The position numbers were made by a program, and so were the translations under genes. Shown piece after piece: positions 3,386-64,000 of a stretch of 64,000 nucleotides of DNA. The stretch lies in contig NC_047024.1 of the NCBI RefSeq assembly GCF_902652985.1, positions 4,030,001 to 4,094,000 on the forward strand, read 5' to 3'. Positions within the stretch are counted from its first letter, which is position 1, and each line of letters starts with the position of its first letter. Source of the DNA: Pecten maximus. Its lineage: Eukaryota. The notes under the pieces were generated by a model. It worked only from the letters and a program-made list of their open reading frames with translations, searched no databases and was not told where the DNA came from.

Positions 3386-3942
3386 GTCCCCAGCCTGCCC
3401 CCGTGGGAGTCGCATCCTCCCTGACAACACAAATAACCATGGTGACTCATCCGGGCCCTGGTGGGGTACAGCAGGGGAACCAGGGGGCATATCGAGGGCC
3501 CCCAACAGGGGCTGAGGGGCAATGGTCCTATCACTGTGATATCTGCCCAAAGTCCTTTCTCACAAAGATGGAACTTAGTGTGCACCTAACACAGCACCAG
3601 CAGCAGAAGAGATATCGCTGTGGGATTTGTCGGTATTCCCTCTCAGACCGAAGTGTGCTGAGACAACACCTACTACAACATAGTAACGAGTTCACACACT
3701 TCTGTTATCCCTGTGGCAAGGGCTTCAAATCCTACACAGGCCACTATCGTCATGAAAAACTCTTCCATCGTCCACAAACCAACAACCCAAAGTGTCAGAT
3801 TTGTGGGCGACAGTTCCCAGATGACAGTAGTCTTAAAATCCACTACCGCAGACATTCTGACGATCGTCCATTTAAATGTGAAATGTGTGGAAAGTCTTAT
3901 AAACACAAGAAAAGTCTACAGGATCATACATGTATCCCATAG
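3386..3942 (+). CDS. Putative alternative terminal exon 2: 5 zinc fingers, last ends H-T-C
   Basis: Acceptor ttcttatctgttcAG at 3384-3385, phase 1 with ORF 3403..3942. HSDDRPFKC linker; stop TAG. Confidence 0.88.
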
Positions 3943-8746: not shown

Positions 8747-9255
8747 GTGATGCCAGAAACACGGGACAGGGAGCCACCATGGATCTTGGGACCTATGTGG
8801 ATAATTTCTATGAGAACAATAGTATGACTACACCAGTGACACAGTCAGCAGGATTTCAACATCAGTTTGTTCAAGGTCATGGAGTTACAAGGTCATTGGA
8901 AGGTCAAGGGGAGATTTCATGTGGATTGTGTTTAGTTTGTTGTAGAGGTAGAGAGGAATTCCGAGATCATGTGTTATTAAGTCACGGCGACCAGTACACA
9001 CACCTGTGTTACGACTGTGGTAAACTGTTCAGGTCCTATCAGGGCTACAAGAAACACGAGAAACTGTATCATCGTGGCGGAGTAGACTGTAAGTCGTGCG
9101 AGATTTGTGGCAAACAATTTCCAGACGATAGCAGTCTTAAAAAGCACAGACTAAAACACACTGGGGATCGACCTTTTGCGTGTGACAAATGTGGCAAAAC
9201 GTATAAACATCGGAGTAATCTTAAAGATCATTCTTGTGTGGGATTTCCTTCATAA
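8747..9255 (+). CDS. Putative alternative terminal exon 4: 4 zinc fingers; near-duplicate of exon 5
   Basis: Acceptor ttgtcttttggtcAG at 8745-8746, phase 1 with ORF 8779..9255. AATAAA at 9267-9272. Confidence 0.88.
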
Positions 9256-9618: not shown

Positions 9619-10603
9619 GGATGATGAACAGAATCTTGTATTTGTAACATGGCTAGTCGCTGTAAACAAGGTGCCCAGAGAAGTTGTTGCTCAGACACAG
9701 TTTGACTGTGTTAATTTTTATATGTTATTATTGGACTTAATGAATTCCACCATCTAGAAGCAGCAGGGAGCTTGTTTATGTGTGATGAAGTATTTTAAGA
9801 TCAGTATTACCAACTATACTGTTTCCTACAATACCTTGGCTGGATATAAAGGTGATGTTGACCCAATGAACAGTCGGTATTGTATGAATCTACTTGTATA
9901 GATATGTTGCACTTCCATGGTAGGAATTGCAGGTGACAGTATGTATATAATGTTCCAAATAAAATGTGTTGGTATGTATATAATGTTCCAAATAAAATGT
10001 GTTGATTTCAGAAAATCAGGTTTTTGTTTGATATGCTTGTGTTGGATAATTACTAAGACTGCAGTGGTAATGAGTTCTTATGTCATGAGTCATAAGAATC
10101 TCGAGTGATTTATTGATAGATTTTTTTGACAATTTGGTGGTAGCTACATACATATGACCTTGACCTTCCAATTTATCTATATAATGAATTTATAATAACT
10201 GACACTATTGACCTTGACATCACAATTTTATGCTTGACTGACTTGATATCATTTTGATCAATAAGCCATACTGCGTGTGTTGTCTGTGACCTGACCTTGT
10301 GATTTATTACAGATCAGTGGTCAGTATGGGATCCTATCATCAGTAGTCACAATATTATATTTGACCACCAATAAAAATATGATACATTGTTATTTACACA
10401 TGACTATCGGATGAAGCACTACGTACGGGTATAATACAAGGTCTGAGGCTGTTGTTTCTAGCTATAGATGATGATTGATGACCAAGCTTGTGCACGTCTA
10501 TTTGTTTAAGCCTCATTAACCAAATATCTTTATTTATACCTGTTTCCTTTGTTTCTTGTGACATTTGACTGAAGGTCATTGTTTCACATTGTCTTTTGGT
10601 CAG

Positions 10604-11103
10604 GTGATGCCAGAAACACGGGACAGGGAGCCACCATGGATCTTGGGACCTATGTGGATAATTTCTATGAGAACAATAGTATGACTACACCAGTGACACA
10701 GTCAGCAGGATTTCAACATCAGTTTGTTCAAGGTCATGGAGTTACAAGGTCATTGGAAGGTCAAGGGGAGATTTCATGTGGATTGTGTTTAGTTTGTTGT
10801 AGAGGTAGAGAGGAATTCCGAGATCATGTGTTATTAAGTCACGGCGACCAGTACACACACCTGTGTTACGACTGTGGTAAGCTGTTCAGGTCCTATCAGG
10901 GCTACAAGAAACACGAGAAACTGTATCATCGTGGCGGAGTAGACTGTAAGTCGTGCGAGATTTGTGGCAGGACGTTTCCTGATGACAGTAGTCTGAAACA
11001 ACACAGACTAAAGCACACTGATGAACGACCCTTCAGCTGTGACAAATGTGGCAAATCTTACAAGTATAGGAATACACTCAAAGATCATTCCTGTATCGGC
11101 TAA
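10604..11103 (+). CDS. Putative alternative terminal exon 5: 4 zinc fingers
   Basis: Acceptor ttgtcttttggtcAG at 10602-10603, phase 1. First ~365 coding nt nearly identical to exon 4. Confidence 0.88.
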
Positions 11104-44391: not shown

Positions 44392-46354
44392 CAGGGTGGC
44401 GGATCACGTGATCCGCGATGGTATACTTCACGGAAAAATGGCGTCGAAAACAGCCCCCTCGACGGGTAATATCAGGTAGGGCAGCTCTGATTACCTCTTG
44501 ATTATTGTTATATATAGCCTAAAACCATCTATCTGTTGGTCCAGCCTTAGTTGTGCAATATTATGTCTAAAATCCCAGTAGTTTGTGAGAACATTGTGCA
44601 CGAAGGTTACGATCGGCGATCTTGAGCTCGGGTATATTTCACGGATCGAACAGAATTTCTTCATAAATCGTCATTTTGATAATGATGCTAGATATAAGTC
44701 ATAGTTAAATAAAAGTTTGACAGATTTTATTGTTAGAAAAATATACTATATACCGTTGTCATTTGAAATAAACATATGCGATGATTCGTATGAAATTGGT
44801 ATAATTCACGGACAAATTAACTATGGTATAATTCACTGCTAACCGGGAATGTATGGTTGTGTTTTCTAGAAGATTCAATTACAATTAAGTCAATCCTTTC
44901 TAAAAATTGAAGTTAAGTGATTTAATATAACGCGCTGCACATAACTTAGAGGCAATTTACTTTATGAAATTTTAGAACAATGGTACATGTTTTGTGTGAA
45001 GTATGCGGCAAGAGCTACCGGAGTAGGTCAGGACTTAACGACCATAAGAGAGTACACCAGAACAATGCACCTTACAAGTGCTGTGCCAAGCTGTTCTTCA
45101 GCAAGGCTAATTATCAAAGACACAGGTAAGTAGACTACTTCAGTATTTTCGGGATTTTTCAGTAAACTACATGACAGTATCTCCGTGACTTTTATAACCT
45201 GTCATAAAGTAAACAAATTTGCCGCCAAATAATCTCCAACAAAGTTTCCAAAATGTCTTTGTTTCAGTTGAGTATCTCATTGCTGTAGTTGTGTTACAGT
45301 CAAACCATCTAACAACTTCAATCCACAGCCGAAAAGCGATGTTGTCAATTGGAAATCGTTTCTCCTTTATTTGGCGAAAAAATTGATAAAGTGAAACATG
45401 GAGTCCATCGTGTTTGGACAGTTCTTGTAAGACATCTGGGACAAGTTCGATTACCTTTTCCTCAATGGTCTCATTTTCCCTTTCTTCGTTTTTTTCGATG
45501 TTTTTTTTCAATTAGCCCTCCATCCGTCTCTGGTATACAGTCGCCAAATAGCGATCGGGATGATTTTGACTTGAGCTTTTTGCTGCGTGGGCTCTTGAAT
45601 GTGTAGGGTGATTTACATATTGGCGACAGCCGTGAAGAAATCAACGGAGAAAAGTAGGGAGATGAGGACTGTTTTGATTTTTTAAACGCCGGTGACACAT
45701 TATAGTGAGATGAGTGTAAGGGTTTAAAAGGTGATTTCAATGGTCCTCTCTTCACTCCAACGGCGACGTTTGACGGGTAAACTATATAAGAAGCTTTTGT
45801 TGAAACGGGAGTCTTTCTTCTCCTTCGTCCAAGGTGGGACTTGGCCTTCATTTTGTCATGTTATCTGAAACAGATGTTGTTTTGTCCGTGAATTATACCA
45901 TTTTCCTGACAAAAATCCTCGCATTAATTTGTGCGTGAATTATACCAATTTCATACGAATCCATCGCATATGTTTATTTCAAATGACAACGGTATATAGT
46001 ATATTTTTCTAACAATAAAATCTGTCAAACTTTTATTTAACTATGACTTATATCTAGCATCATTATCAAAATGACGATTTATGAAGAAATTCTGTTCTGT
46101 TCCGTGAAATATACCCGAGCTCAAGATCGCCGATCATAACCTTCGTGCACAATGTTCTCACAAACTACTGGGATTTTAGACACAATATTGCACAACTAAG
46201 GCTGGACCAACACATAGATGGTTTTAGGCTATATATAACAATAATCAAGAGGTAATCAGAGCTGCCCTACCTGATAATACCCGTCGAGGGGGCTGTTTTC
46301 GACGCCATTTTTCCGTGAAGTATACCATCGCGGATCACGTGATCCGCCACCCTG
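44392..46354 (-). mobile_element. Internally deleted DNA transposon with ~420-bp near-perfect TIRs and a frameshifted coding fragment
   Basis: CAGGGTGGCGGATCACGTGATCCGCG... at 44392 is mirrored at 46354; TIR identity extends to ~44810 / ~45934. GACATC flanks both ends. Internal overlapping - strand ORFs 45471..45851 and 45167..45511. Confidence 0.85.
45167..45851 (-). pseudogene. Truncated, frameshifted transposase-like N-terminal fragment (superfamily not determined)
   Basis: Basic S/P-rich N-terminus, then a frameshift at the T-tracts ~45490-45510 into ...FPIDNIAFRLWIEVVRWF...MRYSTETKTFWKLCWRLFGGKFVYFMTG. Lies inside the TIR element; no catalytic core seen. Confidence 0.5.
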
Positions 46355-52632: not shown

Positions 52633-53619
52633 GATGAACAACTGATTGAAAAAAAAAACTTACTTGTATTACTGATGCTTTTACATATGTGATCGAGCAG
52701 ATATATTTACAATAAATTTAATACAGTTAAAATTTGAATTGACTTAATGTAGATTGAGGTACAAGATTTATTGTACAGATAGACGTACCCCAGAGGATGT
52801 GATAGATGTCTTAGAGAGATAGTGAGGTCACAATTTCATCCTAAGCATGGTCAGGGTATTTCTCTTTACTCATTGGCCAGTGTAAGCTATATTGGATTGC
52901 CAGGATTCCTTTGAGCTAAAGATCCAGGGTTTGTGGTTGTCTTTGGGGACTGACTTTGTGAAGGAAGGAGTTTTGTAAAAGTGGAGAGTAAAGGTCACTT
53001 TGCTCATGTTAAATGACCTCAGCCTTGTGGTAGGTCATCACCTTGAGTGAAGCCTCAGTACAGACAGGACCTCATTCACTACTTATTTGTATAAAAACCG
53101 ATAAACCAACAGAGACAATCGTACAATAGTAAGCTAGATATTTTAAAGTGACTATAAACTCATTAAACATTGATTTCTTCTTAGAAATAATGAAATGGGT
53201 TTAAGATATAAAGATGCACGAGTCTATACCATAAAAGGAGACAGATGAATGGAGTCACAAGGGTGTAAGTGATGAGTCCCCACAGCATTCTGCTTGTGAA
53301 CGGTAACATATCTGTATGTATTCTTGTTGGACGTACTGAATTATTGTTTTGCACTGACATAAGTATTTACAAAACACAGTTGCTGACACTTGTAATTGTC
53401 CTAATAAGGAAAGTCTTAGTTTTAAGATACATTTATTAAAAATATTATGCCTGATGATATTTTCCAATTGATTTTTACAGTTAAAGTTGCTTCAATAAGC
53501 CAGTTGTGTTTTTTAATTACATACCTTTTGTGATAAAACCCAAGTGGCCGGTACGATTTTGCCTGTGTTTACATTGTTACCATGGTACTCAGATACTTGT
53601 TACTTTTGTCTCTCTGTAG

Positions 53620-54092
53620 ATGGCGCTGACAGCGTTGGCCTGCTCCTGGGCGCAGAAGACACTGACAGCCATTCAGAGAAGACATCCGAATTCTCATGTC
53701 CCCTGTGTCATAAAGACTTCCCGACATCCTACAATCTGTGGCAACACATGCAGAGCCACCAGTATAGGTGTTCTATATGTGAGAAAGGGTTCGAGGACAA
53801 GGAGACATTGAGTCGACACCTACTGTCTATACACAGTGAGGAATTCTACCACTTCTGTTTTGAATGTGGTAAGGGTTTTAAATCCTACTCTGGAATCAAT
53901 GACCATAGAAAGACATACCATGGAATGGGTGACCACAAGTGTGATATCTGTGCCAAGTCTTTCTCCTGCAACAGTCGGCTTCTCGTTCATAAGAAGAGCC
54001 ATTCTGACGAACGACCATTCGTCTGCTTGAGCTGTGGAAGGTCCTACAAACACAAGAAGGATTTGCGAGATCATTTCTGTGCCTATACCTAG
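53620..54092 (+). CDS. Putative alternative terminal exon 14: 5 zinc fingers; paralog of exon 13
   Basis: Acceptor cttttgtctctctgtAG at 53618-53619, phase 1. Shares KSFSCNSRLLVHK with exon 13. Confidence 0.88.
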
Positions 54093-55182
54093 TCACGTCT
54101 ACTGGAGGTGTTCTGTAAGCTGTGATTAGTGATCCTCAGTATGTCAGATATTCTTCTTCCCTGCTCATTTATATTCCAAAATGACTGGGCTTGGATGATA
54201 ATACATCCCTGTTAAAGGGATATTCCACACAATTTGTAAAAATTCTCTTCTGTACCTGTTAATAACACTTTTAAAACTATTGTGAGTGTCAAAATATCTT
54301 ACCTTTGGTCAGTTTGGACAAGGTTGGAAATACTCCTGGTCAATATATAATTAGACCACCCTGATACCTAGAGACTTTATGAAGCCTGGACCTGAAGGCT
54401 CGCTGGTTTACAGTTCTGGGTAAAAACATGTGGATTACATGCTGTTCACTTGTAATTTTTGCTGGGATTACAATTTCATTTCCTCAAGATGATTTCTTGT
54501 CAATTTTATAATGAAACAAACTATTTCATACTTTTTGACTCCATCAAAGCAAACCAGTCTGAACACTATGCCTGTGTCTGCTTATACCGAAAATAACGAG
54601 GGGTTCCAATTGAAAACAAACCTGTTATGACATTACCATGGCCACATGCATGTTTGTAATTTGATATAGTTAGATCTGTAAAGAATTCAAAGAATTCCCA
54701 CAAATTAAATATCATACGTTTGTTTATATTTTAAATTGAGGCGTTCGATTTCTGTCAGAACATGCAAATTGTATAAAACACATCTAATGAAATACTTACT
54801 TGTGCAAAATATCAAATGAAGGGTAGACATGGAATTTTCATAATACTGTCACATTCACCCTCTCTAGCTTATTACAACCAGATAATTTAGTACTGAGTGA
54901 TTTTATCCTTTACACATTGTTTTTTAATCAGAAACCACTTAATTGAGAAAGATTTTGGACCATGTCCATCGTATAAAGGAGGCAGACATTTGACTTGTCC
55001 CATCATTAATGGAGACAGACATAAGGGGGGGGGGGGGGTTGGCTGAGGGAATGTAGATATTGAAATCTGAACAGCGCTGACTATTGTGTATTATATTAAA
55101 TTCTTTATTTCAGATACTAGTGGTAATTAAAATGTTTTGTTAGAGTAGCCCAGTAATAGGATTATCGTTTTCTATGTTACAG

Positions 55183-55538
55183 GTCAGATGTGGTCCATCC
55201 CTCCTCCGCTGGAGCGTGACGTATGCCATCAGGTAGCTGTTGGACTCTCCGATTGGCCTGATGCGTCAAATCCAGTAGAACACCAGTTAGTCCGTGTGCC
55301 TGGTCTCAATCGAGCTTGTGGGTTTTGTCGAATCAGCCGTAATAAGACAAAGCAAGGGTATGCAAGAAAGTCGTACTACCAGTGTCAAGTGTGTGCTGTA
55401 CCGCTATGCCGCGGCAACTGTTTCGATTACTACCATGAACTGGTGAATGAACACCGACAATTTGCTTGTTCGGTGAGAGCTATGTATAAAATGTTACTAA
55501 AGAAATTCTCCTACCACCAGAGAGAACTAGGGACTTGA
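55183..55538 (+). CDS. Putative alternative terminal exon 15: piggyBac-transposase-type C-terminal cysteine-rich zinc-binding domain
   Basis: Acceptor cgttttctatgttacAG at 55181-55182, phase 1. RACGFC...RKSYYQCQVCAVPLCRGNCFDYYH fits the PGBD C-terminal pattern (CxxC...CxxCxVPLC...CFxxYH). No DDD core or TIRs seen nearby. Confidence 0.78.
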
Positions 55539-55753
55539 AATATATTTGAGTGTCATGTCGACTGTCTCTTGTTTTTAGGTGTGAATTTATTACTAGTGAG
55601 TAGACTGTGACAAATTCAGGTAGAATTCCATTAAGTTGTGTATTTATTTTCATAATCATTACTTGAAATATTATTTATTTTATCATATTATCGTCATGTT
55701 TAACATTCAGAGTTTACAATATTGTAAGTAAGCTGTAGTTGTAAGCATATATC

Positions 55754-57838
55754 GAGTACAGACTGTAGGTAATTAGTTTACCAGGTATGAGTACAGACTG
55801 TAGGTAATTAGTTTACCAGGTATGAGTACAGACTGTAGGTAATTAGTTTACCAGGTATGAGTACAGACTGTAGGTAATTAGCTTACCAGGTATGAGTACA
55901 GACTGTAGGTAATTAGCTTACCAGGTATGAGTACAGACTGTAGGTAATTGGTTTACCAGGTATGAGTACAGACTGTAGGTAATTAGTTTACCAGGTATGA
56001 GTACAGACTGTAGGTAATTGGTTTACCAGGTATGAGTACAGACTGTAGGTAATTAGTTTACCAGGTATGAGTACAGACTGTAGGTAATTAGTTTACCAGG
56101 TATGAGTACAGACTGTAGGTAATTAGTTTACCAGGTATGAGTACAGACTGTAGGTAATTAGTTTACCAGGTATGACTACAGACTATAGGTAATTAGTTTA
56201 CCAGGTATGACTACAGACTATAGGTAATTAGTTTACCAGGTATGAGTACAGGCTGTAGGTAATTAGTTTACCAGGTATGAGTACAGACTATAGGTAATTA
56301 GTTTACCAGGTATGAGTACAGACTGTAGGTAATTAGTTTACCAGGTATGAGTACAGACTGTAGGTAATTAGTTTACCAGGTATGAGTACAGGCTGTAGGT
56401 AATTGGTTTACCAGGTATGAGTACAGACTGTAGGTAATTAGTTTACCAGGTATGAGTACAGACTGTAGGTAATTAGTTTACCAGGTATGAGTACAGACTG
56501 TAGGTAATTAGTTTACCAGGTATGAGTACAGACTTTAGGTAATTAGTTTACCAGGTATGAGTACAGACTTTAGGTTACCAGGTATGAGTACAGACTGTAG
56601 GTTACCAGGTATGAGTACAGACTGTAGGTAATTAGGTTACCAGGTATGAGTACAGACTGTAGGTAATTAGTTTACCAGGTATGAGTACAGACTGTAGGTT
56701 ACCAGGTATGAGTACAGACTGTAGGTTACCAGGTATGAGTACAGACTGTAGGTTACCAGGTATGAGTACAGACTGTAGGTTACCAGGTATGAGTACAGAC
56801 TGTAGGTAATTAGTTTACCAGGTATGAGTACAGCCTTTAGGTAATTAGTTTACCAGGTATGAGTACAGACTGTAGGTTACCAGGTATGAGTACAGACTGT
56901 AGGTTACCAGGTATGAGTACAGACTGTAGGTAATTAGTTTACCAGGTATGAGTACAGACTGTAGGTAATTAGTTTACCAGGTATGAGTACAGACTGTAGG
57001 TAATTAGTTTACCAGGTATGAGTACAGACTGTAGGTAATTAGTTTACCAGGTATGAGTACAGACTGTAGGTAATTAGTTTACCAGGTATGAGTACAGACT
57101 GTAGGTAATTAGTTTACCAGGTATGTGTACAGACTGTAGGTTACCAGGTATGAGTACAGACTGTAGGTTACCAGGTATGAGTACAGACTTTAGGTAATTA
57201 GTTTACCAGGTATGAGTACAGACTGTAGGTAATTAGTTTACCAGGTATGAGTACAGACTTTAGGTAATTAGTTTACCAGGTATGAGTACAGACTGTAGGT
57301 AATTAGTTTACCAGGTATGAGTACAGACTTTAGGTAATTAGTTTACCAGGTATGAGTACAGACTGTAGGTAATTAGTTTACCAGGTATGTGTACAGACTG
57401 TAGGTAATTAGTTTACCAGGTATGAGTACAGACTGTAGGTTACCAGGTATGAGTACAGACTGTAGGTAATTAGTTTAACAGGTATGAGTACAGACTGTAG
57501 GTAATTAGTTTACCAGGTATGAGTACAGACTGTAGGTAATTAGTTTACCAGGTATGAGTACAGACTTTAGGTAATTAGTTTACCAGGTATGAGTACAGAC
57601 TATAGGTAATTAGTTTACCAAATATGAGTACAGACTGTAGGTAATTAGTTTACCAGGTATGAGTACAGACTGTAGGTAATTAGTTTACCAGGTATGAGTA
57701 CAGACTGTAGGTAATTAGTTTACCAGGTATGAGTACAGGCTGTAGGTTACCAGGTATGAGTACAGACTTTAGGTAATTAGTTTACCAAATATGAGTACAG
57801 ACTGTAGGTAATTAGTTTACCAAGGTATGACTACAGAC
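55754..57838. repeat. 35-bp minisatellite (with 26-bp variants), about 60 copies
   Basis: gagtacagactgtaggtaattagtttaccaggtat repeated. Confidence 0.96.
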
Positions 57839-59272: not shown

Positions 59273-62200
59273 TCAGCCTTTGTTGTCTCCAAGAAGTAAG
59301 ATCAGTTCGTTGATCGGTCGTACATATAACACAGGCTTTCCTTGTCCGGAAGTAATCTTGACCTCTGCCGTTCGAACTAAACCGTCATTGCTTGGGAAGA
59401 CCCTTGCGACATAACCCAATGGCCAATTGTTCCTTGATACCTCCTTGTCCCTAAGTAGCACAATATCCCCTATCGCGATATTCTTGCGCTTGTCATTCCA
59501 TTTCCGTCGAGGTTGTAGAGTATGGAGGTATTGGGCTCTCCAGCGCTTCCAAAATGTGTCGGCTAGAACCTTCACTCTTTTCCACTGCGCCTTGTGCAAA
59601 CTAGAATTATCAAGAGGCACAAATGGTTCGATGATGGAGTCTGGTTTCTGTGTCAGAAGTGTAGCCGGACTGATTGGAAATGGATCCTCCGGATCTGAAG
59701 ACACGGGTACTAGTGGCCTGGCGTTAACGATCGCGCAAACCTCAGCTAGGAAGGTAACGAGTACTTCGTGAGTCAAATTAGTGTCCATCACTGTTGTCAG
59801 CATTGACTCAAGAACGCGACGTGAGACACCTATCATCCTTTCCCAAGCCCCGCCCATATGTGATGCGTGCGGTGGGTTGAAAAGCCAGGTAGTTCCGCGG
59901 TCGTATAGGAATGTCTTCACTGCTTCTTCCTCAACCTTAAAGGCGTTAATCTGCAGATCATCCACCGCGCCAATGAAATTAGTGCCACGATCTGATCGGA
60001 TCTGTTTTACATGGCCCCTCACAGCGGTAAACCTTCTGAAGGCATTAATAAAAGACGACGAACTCAATTCTTCTATTACCTCTATGTGGATAGCCCTGGT
60101 GGTGAGGCATGTGAACATAATTGCCCAGCGTTTTGCTTGGGCTGAACCACCACGAGTACGCCTGCTAACAATCTGCCATGGACCGAAAGTGTCCACACCG
60201 ACGTTGGTGAATGGTGGGCCAGGTTGAAGTCGGTCGGAAGGTATGTCTGCCATCAATTGGTGCTCCAATTTCCCTCGAAGTTTACGACATTTCACGCACG
60301 CATGCAAGACCGTTGATACCAAGCGCTTACAGCCCGTTATCCAATATCCGGCTGTCCTCACGGCTCCTTCTGTGAAATTTCGCCCTTGGTGTTTAACCTG
60401 TTCATGAAATAGTCTCACGAGAAGTAATGCGACATGATGCTTCCCAGGGATGATGATTGGATTCATTTCATTCTGTTGAACATGGCTTTGATTTAGGCGT
60501 CCGCCTACTCGTAGAATTCCATCCTGATCCAAAAATGCGTTCAGTGACAGAATCGAACTTCCGTTTGGAAGAAGTTGATCGCGTTCGAGACTGTTTAGTT
60601 CTTCCGGATATGCCTCTTTTTGCACCTCCTTCACCACGAATTGTTCGGCCTTGTGGTAAGCAGCAACACTTCTGTCCTTACTGCAAATATGCCAACCCCT
60701 ACACTCGGACTTGCTGACAATGGACTGTGCCACATGCGTCAGTGTCATAATAGCCCTGATAAGGGTCCTCCAAGTAGAAAATCTTGCGAAGCGATGAGAA
60801 CCAAGTGGTGACTGTTTGACGTCTGTCTTTAGACTTTGAACCTGGGGCCTTACCTCTTTGTCATCTTCTGGTTCATGCAGATCAAACACATGCTCTGATG
60901 TCATATCATTAATCGTAGTAAGACGAGTAGGTCCATTGAGCCACATGCTGTCTTGAATAGCCTGGGCGGGTACTGATCTTGTCCCTTCATCTGCTGGATT
61001 TCTATCTGTTTGCACATACGACCATTGATCTGCGTCCGTCACGTGTATAATGCGTTCTACCCTATTGGCTACATATGTATAAAACCTCCTTGTTTTGTTG
61101 TATATGTAACCAAGTACAACTTTGCTATCGGTGTGGAATCGAAATTTCTCAAGAGGGATATGTAAGTGGTCAGATACTGTCTCTGCTATGTCCACGGCCA
61201 ATACTGCAGCACACAATTCCAGTCTCGGTATTGTATGGCCATGGAGGGGGGCTACCTTAGCCTTGCCAAGAATGAATCCAATATCTTGTTTTCCGTTTCC
61301 ATCCTTTGTATGTAGATAACTTACTGCAGCGATAGCTTTCTCGGAGGCATCAGAGAAGACATGGACGGTACTGTCAATAGATAGTTTGAATGAAAACTGT
61401 GCGTAGGTCCGAGGTATACGAACATGTTGTAGGTGTTCAAGAGAGTCTCTCCAGAGTTCCCATTGTATGCGATGTTCTGCGGGGAGAGGTTCATCCCAAT
61501 CTTTGGTTCCATGAATAAGAGATCTCAAAAAGTGTTTCCCATCGATTACTACTGGAGCCAAAAATCCTAACGGGTCGAAGATCCCGTTGACAGTTGACAG
61601 TATGCCCCTGCGCGTGTATGGTTTAGCTTCTGTTGAGACTTGATAAAGAAACGAGTCGGTTTCCAAACTCCAACTGACTCCCAAGCTACACTGAACAGGC
61701 AGTGGTTCACATCCTAAATCGAGATCCTTAACACCTTTTGCAAGGTCGTCTGCAGGAAAAGAGTTCATAACTTCATCACTATTAGAGGCAATTTTGTGTA
61801 AGCGTAGTTTCCCTCCTTGGTGAAGTGCATGCTGTGTTCTTTTCATAAGGTCAACAGCTTCGTCGACAGTTGGTAATGAGGTAAGCCCGTCATCCACGTA
61901 GAAGTCATTAGTGACAAAGTCGGAAACGTCATCATCATTTCCTTCGGCTGACTTTCGAAGTCCTAAGGTGGCAATGGCAGGAGAAGGACTGTTTCCGAAG
62001 ACGTGGACGCACATGCGATATTCCACCAACTCATTTTCCGGATTGTTGTCCTTGTACCATAAGAACCTTAAGTAGTTCCTGTGGTCTTCCCTTACTTGAA
62101 AGCAATAAAACATTTGCTCAATGTCTCCTACTATAGCCACCGACTCCCTTCGGAACCGCATCAGCACTCCAAGCAAGCTATTTGCAAGGTCTGGACCAGA

Positions 62201-64000
62201 CATGAGGACATCGTTCAATGAAACTCCATTGTGCCTTGCCGAGGAGTCAAACACTGCTCTAAGTTGCTCCGGTTTCCGCGGGTGGTATACACCGAAAATT
62301 GGTAAATACCAACATTCTTCGCTGTCCTTAAGCGCCGGCGCTAACTCGGCGTGGCCACTACTGAATATCTTTTCCATGAAGTCTACGAAGTGCTGTCGCT
62401 TCACGGGGTTCTTTCGCAGACTGGTATCCAGGGTTCTTGCTCGTTTAACAGCTTGTGTTCGGTTGTTAGTCAATCTTGGTCGTGGATCGCGGAATGGCAG
62501 TGGAGCTATCCATTTACCATCATTACCTTTCACAAGCTCTTCTTTCATGATGCCGAGAAACCTTCGGTCTTCCTGTGACATGCTGACTTTCTCATCCTCC
62601 TTTGTACGATGGAACACATGTTTTCCTAATACATCAAGCTCCTTTAAGGACCTGTTCGCATCGTAGATGCACTCAAATTCGTTCGGACAGGGTTTGAAGA
62701 GTGATGGTCGGCCATCTGCTAGGAAATTGGTTTTACAAACATTTACTAGTTCTGGAATGCGAGTCCTTCCTAAGCAAGTCTCTCCGATTATGACCCAACC
62801 GAGAGGGAGTTTCTGGGCATATGGCGTGTTTGATGGTCCTATTCTCTGGTCCAAAACATGATGAGCTCTAATTACGTCCCTTCCAATAAGCATCAAAATG
62901 TGAGCAGTGTTGTCAATAGGAGGAATACACTTGGCAACGTCTCTGAGATGGGCGTAGTTTTCGGCTACCTCAGGAGTAGGTATTTCATCGCGAATTTCAG
63001 GGACGCGGTCACATTCTAACAGGATGGGAATGTCAAGACTTATAGACCTGTCTACAGGTTCAACGATAACCTTAGTCGAGTCTCTGCCTGTGGTCTTCGA
63101 AACCCCGGACACCGAAGATAACACGTAGTTGTGTTGTTTTCCTTTAATGCCAAGTTGGTCAAATAATTGTGATTTGGCCAGTGACATGTTGCTCTGGTCG
63201 TCAATCATGGCATAAAGTCTTATGCGGTCTGTGGGTCGGTCTTGATGGAACGCGTCAACAAGAACAATTTTGGCACATGATTTCCCTTTGAACTTATTGC
63301 CACAGATCTGCGTGCAGTTAACTTGGACAGGAGATTTAGATACCAGTGATGCAGGCTCCTCGCCGTACTCTAAGGAGCCTGAATTTGACTGATGCTCAAG
63401 ATGGAGTGCTGTGCAGTGCCTTGCACTATTACATTCGCTACAAGGTTGTTTCACATCACAGTTGCGACTGATGTGTGACGTCGATTCACAGCACCGGAAG
63501 CAGACCTTCTTATCCCGCAACAACTTCTTCCTCTCCTCCATCGACATGGTGAGGAAGGCCCTACATTTGTTGAGAGTGTGGGAACTAACGTTGTGTAGAA
63601 AACAAGTCTTTCTGTTTCTGTCACTGTTTTGTATGCTATCAGCGTTGGTTTTCCTGACTGAGATGTTCTTTCTCTCTTGAGGATTCCTTTGTACAGTCTT
63701 ATCATTCTTGCTTCCATTAGGTTGGTCATATGTGAAACTGGGATTGTTTTTCACTTTACTTAGATCTCTCAAAAATTCAGAGAAGAAACTGAATGGAGGA
63801 AATGCGACATGGTGTGTTTTTGTAAACTTTATTGCAGCATTGGTCCATCTCTCTTGTAGGTTATGTGGAAGTTTGGACACAATTGGCGAGACTCCTGTCG
63901 ATGAGTCGAAGTATCCTAAAAGAGACTTATATTGGCTATCCTCCTTGAGTGATTCAATTTCGGATGCTAAATCTGATAGATCAAACAGTTTCTTGGTGTC
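59273..64000 (-). CDS. BEL/Pao LTR retrotransposon Gag-Pol polyprotein (5' end beyond window)
   Basis: Uninterrupted ORF, also open from 63881 to 64000. Cys/His Gag knuckles, protease IDDQSN, RT (RAVFDSS, DIEQMF, FYVDD), Pao RNase H (FSDASEKA, IPRLELCAA, TDS, NPAD), integrase (H..H..CxxC, GVDTFGP, SDRGTNF, GGAWERMI) and C-terminal W.LG.V..V.P..DG.VR. Confidence 0.96.
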   Translation of the reverse strand, partial: DTKKLFDLSDLASEIESLKEDSQYKSLLGYFDSSTGVSPIVSKLPHNLQERWTNAAIKFTKTHHVAFPPFSFFSEFLRDLSKVKNNPSFTYDQPNGSKNDKTVQRNPQERKNISVRKTNADSIQNSDRNRKTCFLHNVSSHTLNKCRAFLTMSMEERKKLLRDKKVCFRCCESTSHISRNCDVKQPCSECNSARHCTALHLEHQSNSGSLEYGEEPASLVSKSPVQVNCTQICGNKFKGKSCAKIVLVDAFHQDRPTDRIRLYAMIDDQSNMSLAKSQLFDQLGIKGKQHNYVLSSVSGVSKTTGRDSTKVIVEPVDRSISLDIPILLECDRVPEIRDEIPTPEVAENYAHLRDVAKCIPPIDNTAHILMLIGRDVIRAHHVLDQRIGPSNTPYAQKLPLGWVIIGETCLGRTRIPELVNVCKTNFLADGRPSLFKPCPNEFECIYDANRSLKELDVLGKHVFHRTKEDEKVSMSQEDRRFLGIMKEELVKGNDGKWIAPLPFRDPRPRLTNNRTQAVKRARTLDTSLRKNPVKRQHFVDFMEKIFSSGHAELAPALKDSEECWYLPIFGVYHPRKPEQLRAVFDSSARHNGVSLNDVLMSGPDLANSLLGVLMRFRRESVAIVGDIEQMFYCFQVREDHRNYLRFLWYKDNNPENELVEYRMCVHVFGNSPSPAIATLGLRKSAEGNDDDVSDFVTNDFYVDDGLTSLPTVDEAVDLMKRTQHALHQGGKLRLHKIASNSDEVMNSFPADDLAKGVKDLDLGCEPLPVQCSLGVSWSLETDSFLYQVSTEAKPYTRRGILSTVNGIFDPLGFLAPVVIDGKHFLRSLIHGTKDWDEPLPAEHRIQWELWRDSLEHLQHVRIPRTYAQFSFKLSIDSTVHVFSDASEKAIAAVSYLHTKDGNGKQDIGFILGKAKVAPLHGHTIPRLELCAAVLAVDIAETVSDHLHIPLEKFRFHTDSKVVLGYIYNKTRRFYTYVANRVERIIHVTDADQWSYVQTDRNPADEGTRSVPAQAIQDSMWLNGPTRLTTINDMTSEHVFDLHEPEDDKEVRPQVQSLKTDVKQSPLGSHRFARFSTWRTLIRAIMTLTHVAQSIVSKSECRGWHICSKDRSVAAYHKAEQFVVKEVQKEAYPEELNSLERDQLLPNGSSILSLNAFLDQDGILRVGGRLNQSHVQQNEMNPIIIPGKHHVALLLVRLFHEQVKHQGRNFTEGAVRTAGYWITGCKRLVSTVLHACVKCRKLRGKLEHQLMADIPSDRLQPGPPFTNVGVDTFGPWQIVSRRTRGGSAQAKRWAIMFTCLTTRAIHIEVIEELSSSSFINAFRRFTAVRGHVKQIRSDRGTNFIGAVDDLQINAFKVEEEAVKTFLYDRGTTWLFNPPHASHMGGAWERMIGVSRRVLESMLTTVMDTNLTHEVLVTFLAEVCAIVNARPLVPVSSDPEDPFPISPATLLTQKPDSIIEPFVPLDNSSLHKAQWKRVKVLADTFWKRWRAQYLHTLQPRRKWNDKRKNIAIGDIVLLRDKEVSRNNWPLGYVARVFPSNDGLVRTAEVKITSGQGKPVLYVRPINELILLLGDNKG

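Follow-up and report, generated by a model that had tools for sequence, protein, structure and literature searches.

A piggyBac-type cysteine-rich domain encoded by a probable alternative terminal exon of a BTB gene in the scallop Pecten maximus

Here we provide evidence that positions 55183-55538 of the stretch of Pecten maximus DNA that we analysed (64 kb, C10:4030001-4094000 of the 918-Mb assembly; hereafter, the window) are transcribed and conserved and encode a piggyBac-type cysteine-rich domain (CRD). The reading that we favour, with a probability of roughly 0.78, is that they form the last alternative 3'-terminal cassette exon of LOC117336858, a lola/mod(mdg4)-like gene, and that this exon is a diverged cassette copy. 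According to this reading, a constant part containing a BTB domain would be joined via a phase-1 donor to one of many single-exon cassettes, each of which would supply its own DNA-binding module and its own stop codon. An earlier note, written from the letters of the window, had proposed that a piggyBac domain was captured at this site as one cassette of an exon array. Its view of the domain and of the logic of the exon is upheld by our results; its view of the history, a single capture, is not. The features concerned are listed below, and positions without a prefix are those of the window.

53620-54092, + strand: last C2H2 cassette exon, next to the CRD exon (positive control for the splice to the constant exon)
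55153-55182, + strand: end of the intron, with a pyrimidine-rich tract and a cag acceptor (from the sequence; RNA-like contigs are absent on 54131-55182)
55183-55538, + strand: coding part of the probable alternative terminal exon (117 codons after the Gly codon; TGA at 55536-55538)
55281-55436, + strand: piggyBac-type cysteine-rich domain (zf-Tnp_2), His32-His83 (Pfam; profile match at C10:4085281-4085436)
55437-55535, + strand: C-terminal extension with a predicted long helix (model residues 96-113; AlphaFold model)
55539-55753, + strand: 3' untranslated region (contigs of runs X1, X2 and X8 reach beyond 55750)
55754-57838, no strand: 35-nt minisatellite in 62 copies, right behind the exon (repeat pattern)

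The host gene, LOC117336858, has its BTB exon at C10:3980697 on the + strand, and RefSeq contains at least 33 isoforms of it, whose only variable part is one terminal cassette exon. All the isoforms that we retrieved have 585 residues in common, which carry the BTB domain at the N-terminus and end with ...SSWYMGSYK; the tails that follow are wholly different. The shared donor (AAAG/gtaggaat, C10:3982562) is of phase 1, leaving one base of a codon. Five RefSeq tails could be mapped in the window, and all are single terminal exons with phase-1 acceptors (at 3386, 8747, 12805, 21192 and 22250), each with its own stop. Thus, the shared constant exon that the earlier note had predicted does exist, as evidenced by the RefSeq isoforms, their common donor and the junction letters at the neighbouring C2H2 exon described below. 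The same holds for its observation that the CRD exon agrees with the C2H2 exons in strand, phase-1 acceptor and terminal stop: the layout matches that of the five RefSeq-mapped C2H2 cassettes. It should be noted that the multi-cassette BTB architecture was found for LOC117336858 as a whole, and that what was found for the CRD exon itself is the phase and the RNA boundary.

Most cassettes of LOC117336858 encode C2H2 fingers, one encodes a BEN domain and three are zf-C17orf113-like, so that, with the CRD, one BTB scaffold is combined with at least four unrelated module types. The BEN cassette corresponds to isoform X25 (C10:3984172-3984687; 23.1 bits, just below the cut-off of 23.2), and the zf-C17orf113-like cassettes to isoforms X27-X29, which lie outside the window; the two that were scanned, X27 and X29, score 26-27 bits, below the cut-off of 29.5. 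The C2H2 cassettes at 8747-9255 and 10579-11103 are nearly identical over ~120 residues from the start, with differences confined to the region near the end, which looks like a recent tandem duplication. Two adjoining open frames of 114 and 126 aa without a Pfam match are present on the - strand inside the array (45167-45851). Beyond the last cassette, between LOC117336858 and the next BTB gene, the - strand carries an intact BEL/Pao pol frame of 1535 codons (59273-63880; Peptidase_A17, 154 bits; DUF5641, 95 bits).

Around 55150-55538, the reading frame on the + strand is open for 129 codons, and the open reading frame listing gives 55188-55538 (116 aa, stop codon TGA). Eleven codons inside the open frame lies an acceptor, ...ttttctatgttacag/GT, which makes 55183 the first base of the exon. 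This site is the only in-frame AG preceded by a pyrimidine tract (14 pyrimidines out of 20), and it is weaker than the consensus of the paralogs, ...cctttcag. The exon is of phase 1: the GT at 55183-55184 completes the Gly codon started by the G of the donor, QMWS... follows, and the product of the exon amounts to 118 aa. We considered the second CAG as an alternative acceptor (55188) and rejected it; its use would lead to an early stop after a frame shift and would leave the contig ends described below unexplained. The distance from the donor to the CRD exon is 102,620 nt (an intron of ~102.6 kb), and the last C2H2 cassette lies 1.1 kb upstream of the exon. None of the 22 RefSeq isoforms of LOC117336858 that we retrieved (of at least 33) contains the CRD exon. 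The expected CRD product has 703 aa, and nothing is annotated between X30 (718 aa) and X31 (690 aa). Likewise, no CRD isoform of the orthologous gene is listed in the other three scallops. The CRD exon would add an unannotated isoform to the annotation of LOC117336858.

No AATAAA is present in 55539-55753, and the transcript continues into the minisatellite. Because RNA contigs run towards this array, the minisatellite behind the CRD exon may be 3' untranslated sequence. Minisatellites are abundant in this region: between positions 1 and 58000 of the window there are 34 arrays, each with its own unit of 17-130 nt, making up 45% of the cassette array. For 11 of 15 cassettes, a minisatellite array lies at most 250 nt downstream of the stop codon (at most 40 nt in 6 of the 15), a proximity that random non-repeat positions matched in at most 1 of 10,000 trials.

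Several lines of evidence identify the encoded domain. With the Pfam profile zf-Tnp_2 (PF13842), residues 32-83 score 31.0 bits (E 3.9e-7), above the gathering cut-off of 24, and match positions 6-59 of the 60 in the profile; the same stretch scores 31.8 bits in a profile scan of the genome. The Cys/His pattern quoted in the earlier note is present in 55183-55538 and, given the Pfam score, is more than a chance resemblance. No variation is seen among 40 aligned relatives at the eight presumed zinc ligands (H32, C44, C47, C66, C69, C74, C78 and H83), through which the CRD would bind two zinc ions. The loop between C47 and C66 is long and very basic, and is conserved across cassettes. The AlphaFold (AF2) model has a pLDDT of >90 over residues 31-100, which include the domain, and its best match in the PDB is the piggyBat CRD (9c0f; Z 4.8, against 3.2 for the next row; rmsd 3.0 Å over 57 residues, 28% identity). 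Foldseek gives this match a probability of 0.98 but an E value of 0.04, scores that are modest for so small a domain. Furthermore, the piggyBat CRD is the best sequence match in a phmmer search of the PDB (E 0.0095), and C1 domains and PiggyMac rank below it among the PDB matches. The Pfam match, the eight invariant ligands and piggyBat as the top PDB match all agree with the earlier identification of the domain as a piggyBac-type CRD. It has been reported that the CRDs of PiggyMac, piggyBat and human PGBD2-4 have an upstream His and a C1-like binuclear cross-brace, and that the CRD of T. ni piggyBac is PHD-like, with the arrangement CxxC-CxxC-CxxH-CxxC (PMC8086355). By its ligand arrangement, the CRD of the exon is of the piggyBat/PiggyMac type and not of the PHD-like T. 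ni type.

DNA binding has been shown for the piggyBat CRD, and in its complex with DNA an imperfect palindrome is read jointly by both CRDs of the transposase dimer, mainly via the long loop after the first strand, which enters the major groove (PMC11707139). No DNA binding in vitro was found for the PiggyMac CRD (PMC8086355), so that binding is not a general property of CRDs of this type. We infer that the CRD of the exon binds DNA. The BTB domain would dimerise the protein and present two CRDs together, as in the piggyBat transposase dimer, and the DNA target of the common BTB scaffold would change from one CRD cassette to the next.

The CRD stretch was found in twelve public runs belonging to four studies. 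The contigs of these runs total 42-177 million letters, which, compared with a genome of 918 Mb, is a small amount and fits RNA. We aligned the contigs of four runs to 53300-55750; these represent three independent data sets, since runs X1 and X7 have the same size and identical rows. The contigs cover only two exons in this region and leave 54131-55182 without cover. On the CRD exon, the contigs begin precisely at 55183 (runs X2 and X8) or at 55187 (run X1) and extend beyond 55750, at a low depth of 3-4. Thus, the exon is transcribed, as contigs from three independent studies show, and the contig ends strongly support a boundary of the RNA at 55183, where the acceptor was predicted. The neighbouring C2H2 exon served as a control: the alignment of a contig of run X1 begins at 53618, and the loose letters of this contig, GGATCTTACAA, correspond to the end of the constant exon. 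These letters fix the C2H2 acceptor at 53620 and demonstrate that such contigs can report a junction. At 55183, however, no contig in the three independent data sets carries letters of the constant exon. A plain junction between the constant exon and the CRD exon would carry the final AG onto 55181-55182, and the contigs of two studies stop at 55183 instead. This may mean that the exon has several upstream partners, or that the junction words were lost at a depth of 3-4. Hence, of the two things that junction reads could reveal, the boundary at 55183 is seen and letters joining the CRD exon to the shared donor are not. Since the contigs lack constant-exon letters, we infer the splice to the BTB constant exon, and this unseen junction is the weakest link of our explanation.

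In an exhaustive protein search, OWF43300.1 of Mizuhopecten yessoensis (110 aa, E 1e-64) was the one close relative of the exon product, and it was the only ortholog found when the 116-aa protein was used. It is 89-90% identical over residues 1-111, including the parts outside the CRD. GenBank models it as a separate 110-aa gene with the same Met start, and the scaffold on which it lies (3,811,173 bp) also carries the orthologous BTB gene with its isoforms. The frame of the ortholog is open. Orthologous C2H2 cassettes of Pecten and Mizuhopecten are 77-91% identical and the constant part is 89% identical; the ortholog of cassette 53620-54092, for instance, is the tail of Mizuhopecten isoform X26 and is 79% identical. 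Since its 89% identity falls within the range of the C2H2 cassettes, the CRD exon has been kept as well as undoubted coding exons, and its presence in Mizuhopecten indicates that it is old. In addition, two runs from other individuals show a single coding difference in the covered part, which is synonymous (55535, ACT to ACC), and four differences in the 215-nt untranslated region.

We found no transposon around the exon. A tblastn search of the whole 64-kb window with open reading frames from five piggyBac transposase loci of the genome, made for remnants of the catalytic core, matched only 55281-55439, and no core (PF13843/DDE_Tnp_1_7) near the locus was among the 117 matches listed (116 of 516 candidates were scored). 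No plausible pair of terminal inverted repeats brackets the exon. The tblastn and inverted-repeat searches thus confirm what had been read from the letters, namely that neither a catalytic core nor terminal repeats surround the exon. The flanks are single copy, except for a dispersed repeat of ~110 nt (54706-54813) and the minisatellite from 55754, and multicopy piggyBac flanks are absent. We accordingly rejected a transposon relic, there being no core remnant, no terminal inverted repeats and no multicopy flanks. The dispersed repeat, 370 nt upstream of the acceptor, has copies that are 71-88% identical on C9, C14, C15 and elsewhere on C10. Genome-wide, there are more than 100 matches to the piggyBac catalytic core, many of them intact frames of 570-590 codons; some are identical copies on several chromosomes, so that piggyBac-like elements look recently active in the Pecten maximus genome. 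The CRD of the exon is 45% identical to that of one genomic piggyBac transposase locus.

The closest relatives of the exon are found nearby. When the genome was searched with the exon product and the Pfam profile, at least 56 distinct short open frames of the CRD type (91-273 codons) emerged between 3.756 and 4.180 Mb of C10. They fall into four groups, one behind each of four BTB exons and sharing its strand:

Gene A: BTB exon at C10:3843294, - strand; 12 CRD frames, C10:3755968-3808762
Gene B (LOC117336493): BTB exon at C10:3969361, - strand; 14 CRD frames, C10:3927965-3958194
Gene C (LOC117336858): BTB exon at C10:3980697, + strand; 1 CRD frame (the exon at 55183-55538)
Gene D (LOC117336857, judged by cassette matches): BTB exon at C10:4107265, + strand; 29 CRD frames, C10:4124011-4179730

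The counts were taken from search tables and from the sequence of 12 loci and are lower bounds (at least 14, 29 and 12 in the sister genes). Elsewhere in the genome there are about two dozen CRD matches, mostly at the ends of transposase frames of 430-580 codons. All of the other Pecten CRD cassette frames that were read (14 of 14) have a phase-1 acceptor, typically ...cctttcag. The closest paralog of the CRD exon is a cassette of the head-to-head sister gene LOC117336493, which is 51-53% identical, has the helix motif after the CRD in common with it and forms the tail of isoform X12 of that gene; it is also the tail of Argopecten isoform X14. This ...YKMLLKKFS-like motif in the C-terminal extension is common to one cassette subfamily (a gene B cassette, an Argopecten protein and gene D cassettes). 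RefSeq contains isoforms with a BTB domain and a PF13842 tail in four scallops (Pecten, Ylistrum, Mizuhopecten and Argopecten), such isoforms are also annotated in two oysters (Saccostrea echinata and Crassostrea virginica), and CRD-only mini-ORFs are present in Pinctada and Tegillarca. Bivalve databases also hold mini-proteins named 'PiggyBac transposable element-derived protein 4 C-terminal zinc-finger domain-containing' (Mizuhopecten, Tegillarca and Pinctada), together with more than 100 unnamed short ORFs; these mini-proteins are likely cassette exons mis-modelled as separate genes, and the short ORFs look like cassette exons as well. In a quick tree of 165 CRDs (65 columns), from which no row was deliberately excluded, the midpoint root separates 11 of 11 transposase-linked CRDs from 33 of 33 cassettes, with a branch support of 26. 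Such a split fits a single old domestication with later duplication of cassettes, without being a proof of it.

These results alter the history that had been proposed for the exon. Within the 64-kb window it does stand isolated; beyond it, at least 56 such cassettes are present in four neighbouring genes. It was not captured as one cassette, because at least 56 cassettes are spread over four clustered BTB paralogs and its nearest relative is a cassette of LOC117336493, not a transposase. It agrees with the earlier proposal of a transposase module domesticated as an isoform in having the layout of a terminal cassette exon in phase with the C2H2 cassettes, and it is transcribed and conserved; it departs from that proposal in having arisen by cassette duplication. 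The BTB isoforms with a zf-Tnp_2 tail in oysters likewise point to an old domestication and to an origin of the exon from cassette duplication. The exon would then be a diverged copy of the cassette type that fills the arrays of three neighbouring BTB paralogs, and not a transposon that landed at this site.

The same data bear on explanations other than the one we prefer. It is possible, although unlikely, that 55183-55538 belongs to a small gene or transcript of its own that starts from the Met at 55188, or that it is joined to some other upstream exon, outside the BTB protein in either case. The contigs that end exactly at 55183 without constant-exon letters would fit this, as would the 110-aa protein with the same Met that GenBank models in Mizuhopecten and the lack of the CRD exon in the RefSeq isoforms retrieved. 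However, the contig end is identical in two studies and lies directly behind a cag acceptor with a pyrimidine tract, which is rarely where transcription starts. Moreover, the frame is open through the acceptor and in the phase of the constant donor, the phase-1 layout recurs in 14 of 14 other Pecten CRD cassette frames examined, many cassettes of the CRD type are RefSeq-supported tails of BTB isoforms, and the first 30 residues ahead of the CRD are conserved as well.

It seems very unlikely to us that the exon is a pseudo-exon, that is, a copy of a cassette from gene B or gene D, left stranded behind the C2H2 array, with a low level of transcription and no function. On the one hand, it is the sole CRD cassette in the array of LOC117336858 and sits at its far end, 1.1 kb past the last C2H2 exon and before a retrotransposon. 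In addition, the paralogs have a stronger acceptor, ...cctttcag, and the RNA depth is only 3-4. On the other hand, the frame is intact and, with 89% identity to that of Mizuhopecten, ranks near the top of the range seen for functional C2H2 cassettes; all eight ligands are kept, and the sole coding polymorphism is synonymous. A recent piggyBac exon trap at this very site, comparable to CSB-PGBD3 and of which only the CRD remains, is more improbable still: the genome does contain more than 100 piggyBac transposase matches, many with intact frames, and one transposase has a CRD 45% identical to that of the exon, but a core remnant, terminal repeats and multicopy flanks were all sought around the exon and not found, its closest relatives are cassettes and not transposases, and it has an ortholog in another genus.

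The organisation of LOC117336858 resembles that of Drosophila lola and mod(mdg4), in which BTB constant exons are followed by about 20-30 alternative 3' cassettes. In both cases, an N-terminal BTB domain is encoded in common exons, and behind these lies a long series of terminal exons that exclude one another and that each supply a separate zinc-finger module and stop codon. The cassettes of lola encode C2H2 fingers and those of mod(mdg4) encode FLYWCH fingers, which form a Pfam family of their own and are often regarded as transposase-related. The scallop system differs in that its host is a mollusc, that a single gene combines the piggyBac CRD with C2H2, BEN and further modules, and that four paralogs lie side by side. 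The TTK-type BTB motif of arthropods has been reported to be absent from Mollusca (PMC11426971), and all mod(mdg4) mRNAs are made by trans-splicing (PMC13490949). The likeness is one of architecture and is probably convergent.

As for the domain, the scallop CRD agrees with those of piggyBat, PGBD2-4 and PiggyMac in the order and spacing type of its ligands (His, CxxC, CxxC, C, C, His) and in the long loop after the first CxxC. Its six Cys and two His are as in PiggyMac, whereas piggyBat has Cys3His1 and Cys2His2, and it differs from both piggyBat and PiggyMac in being without a DDE transposase core and in having a predicted extra C-terminal helix. The earlier note had likened the exon to CSB-PGBD3, in which a transposase-derived module also serves as an alternative 3' terminal exon behind a host interaction or effector part. 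The analogy does not fit: CSB-PGBD3 contains the whole transposase ORF of one inserted element, whereas the CRD is the only transposase-matching part of the 118-aa scallop exon, a module of only ~55 aa that has been multiplied into dozens of diverged cassettes. A different parallel is offered by the KRAB zinc-finger genes of vertebrates, which lie in tandem clusters and in which an N-terminal module of the repressor or oligomerising kind is likewise joined to a DNA-binding repertoire that has diversified rapidly. There, the diversity resides in many genes, whereas in the scallop it comes from alternative exons in few genes. Any link between the scallop cassettes and transposon control is speculation.

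The exon at 55183-55538 is an unannotated member of a BTB cassette system, and its interest lies mainly in the expansion of the CRD across the cluster. BTB-CRD isoforms are already contained in the automated annotation, and no description of BTB-piggyBac CRD cassette arrays was found in the literature that we searched. New transcription factors are known to be built from the DNA-binding domains of transposases, which are usually captured singly. A CRD of ~55 residues present in dozens of exons behind BTB scaffolds, from scallops to oysters, would rank among the largest cases in which a domesticated transposase domain has expanded, and the BTB-CRD system would be an independent invention of the lola/mod(mdg4) strategy of making many DNA-binding proteins from one gene. 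With low confidence, we suggest that pteriomorph bivalves might have their own counterpart of lola/mod(mdg4), in which a CRD repertoire (at least 56 in the scallop) would act as sequence-specific DNA readers presented as dimers. Their targets may be subterminal palindromes of intact piggyBac-like elements, amounting to a splicing-based surveillance like that by KRAB-ZNF proteins, with cassettes perhaps shared between genes; the 55183-55538 exon would then be one such reader on a gene that otherwise carries mainly C2H2 cassettes. The cassettes provide a natural variant series for how a little-studied zinc finger reads DNA, and their repertoires allow a test of whether they track the transposons resident in the genome.
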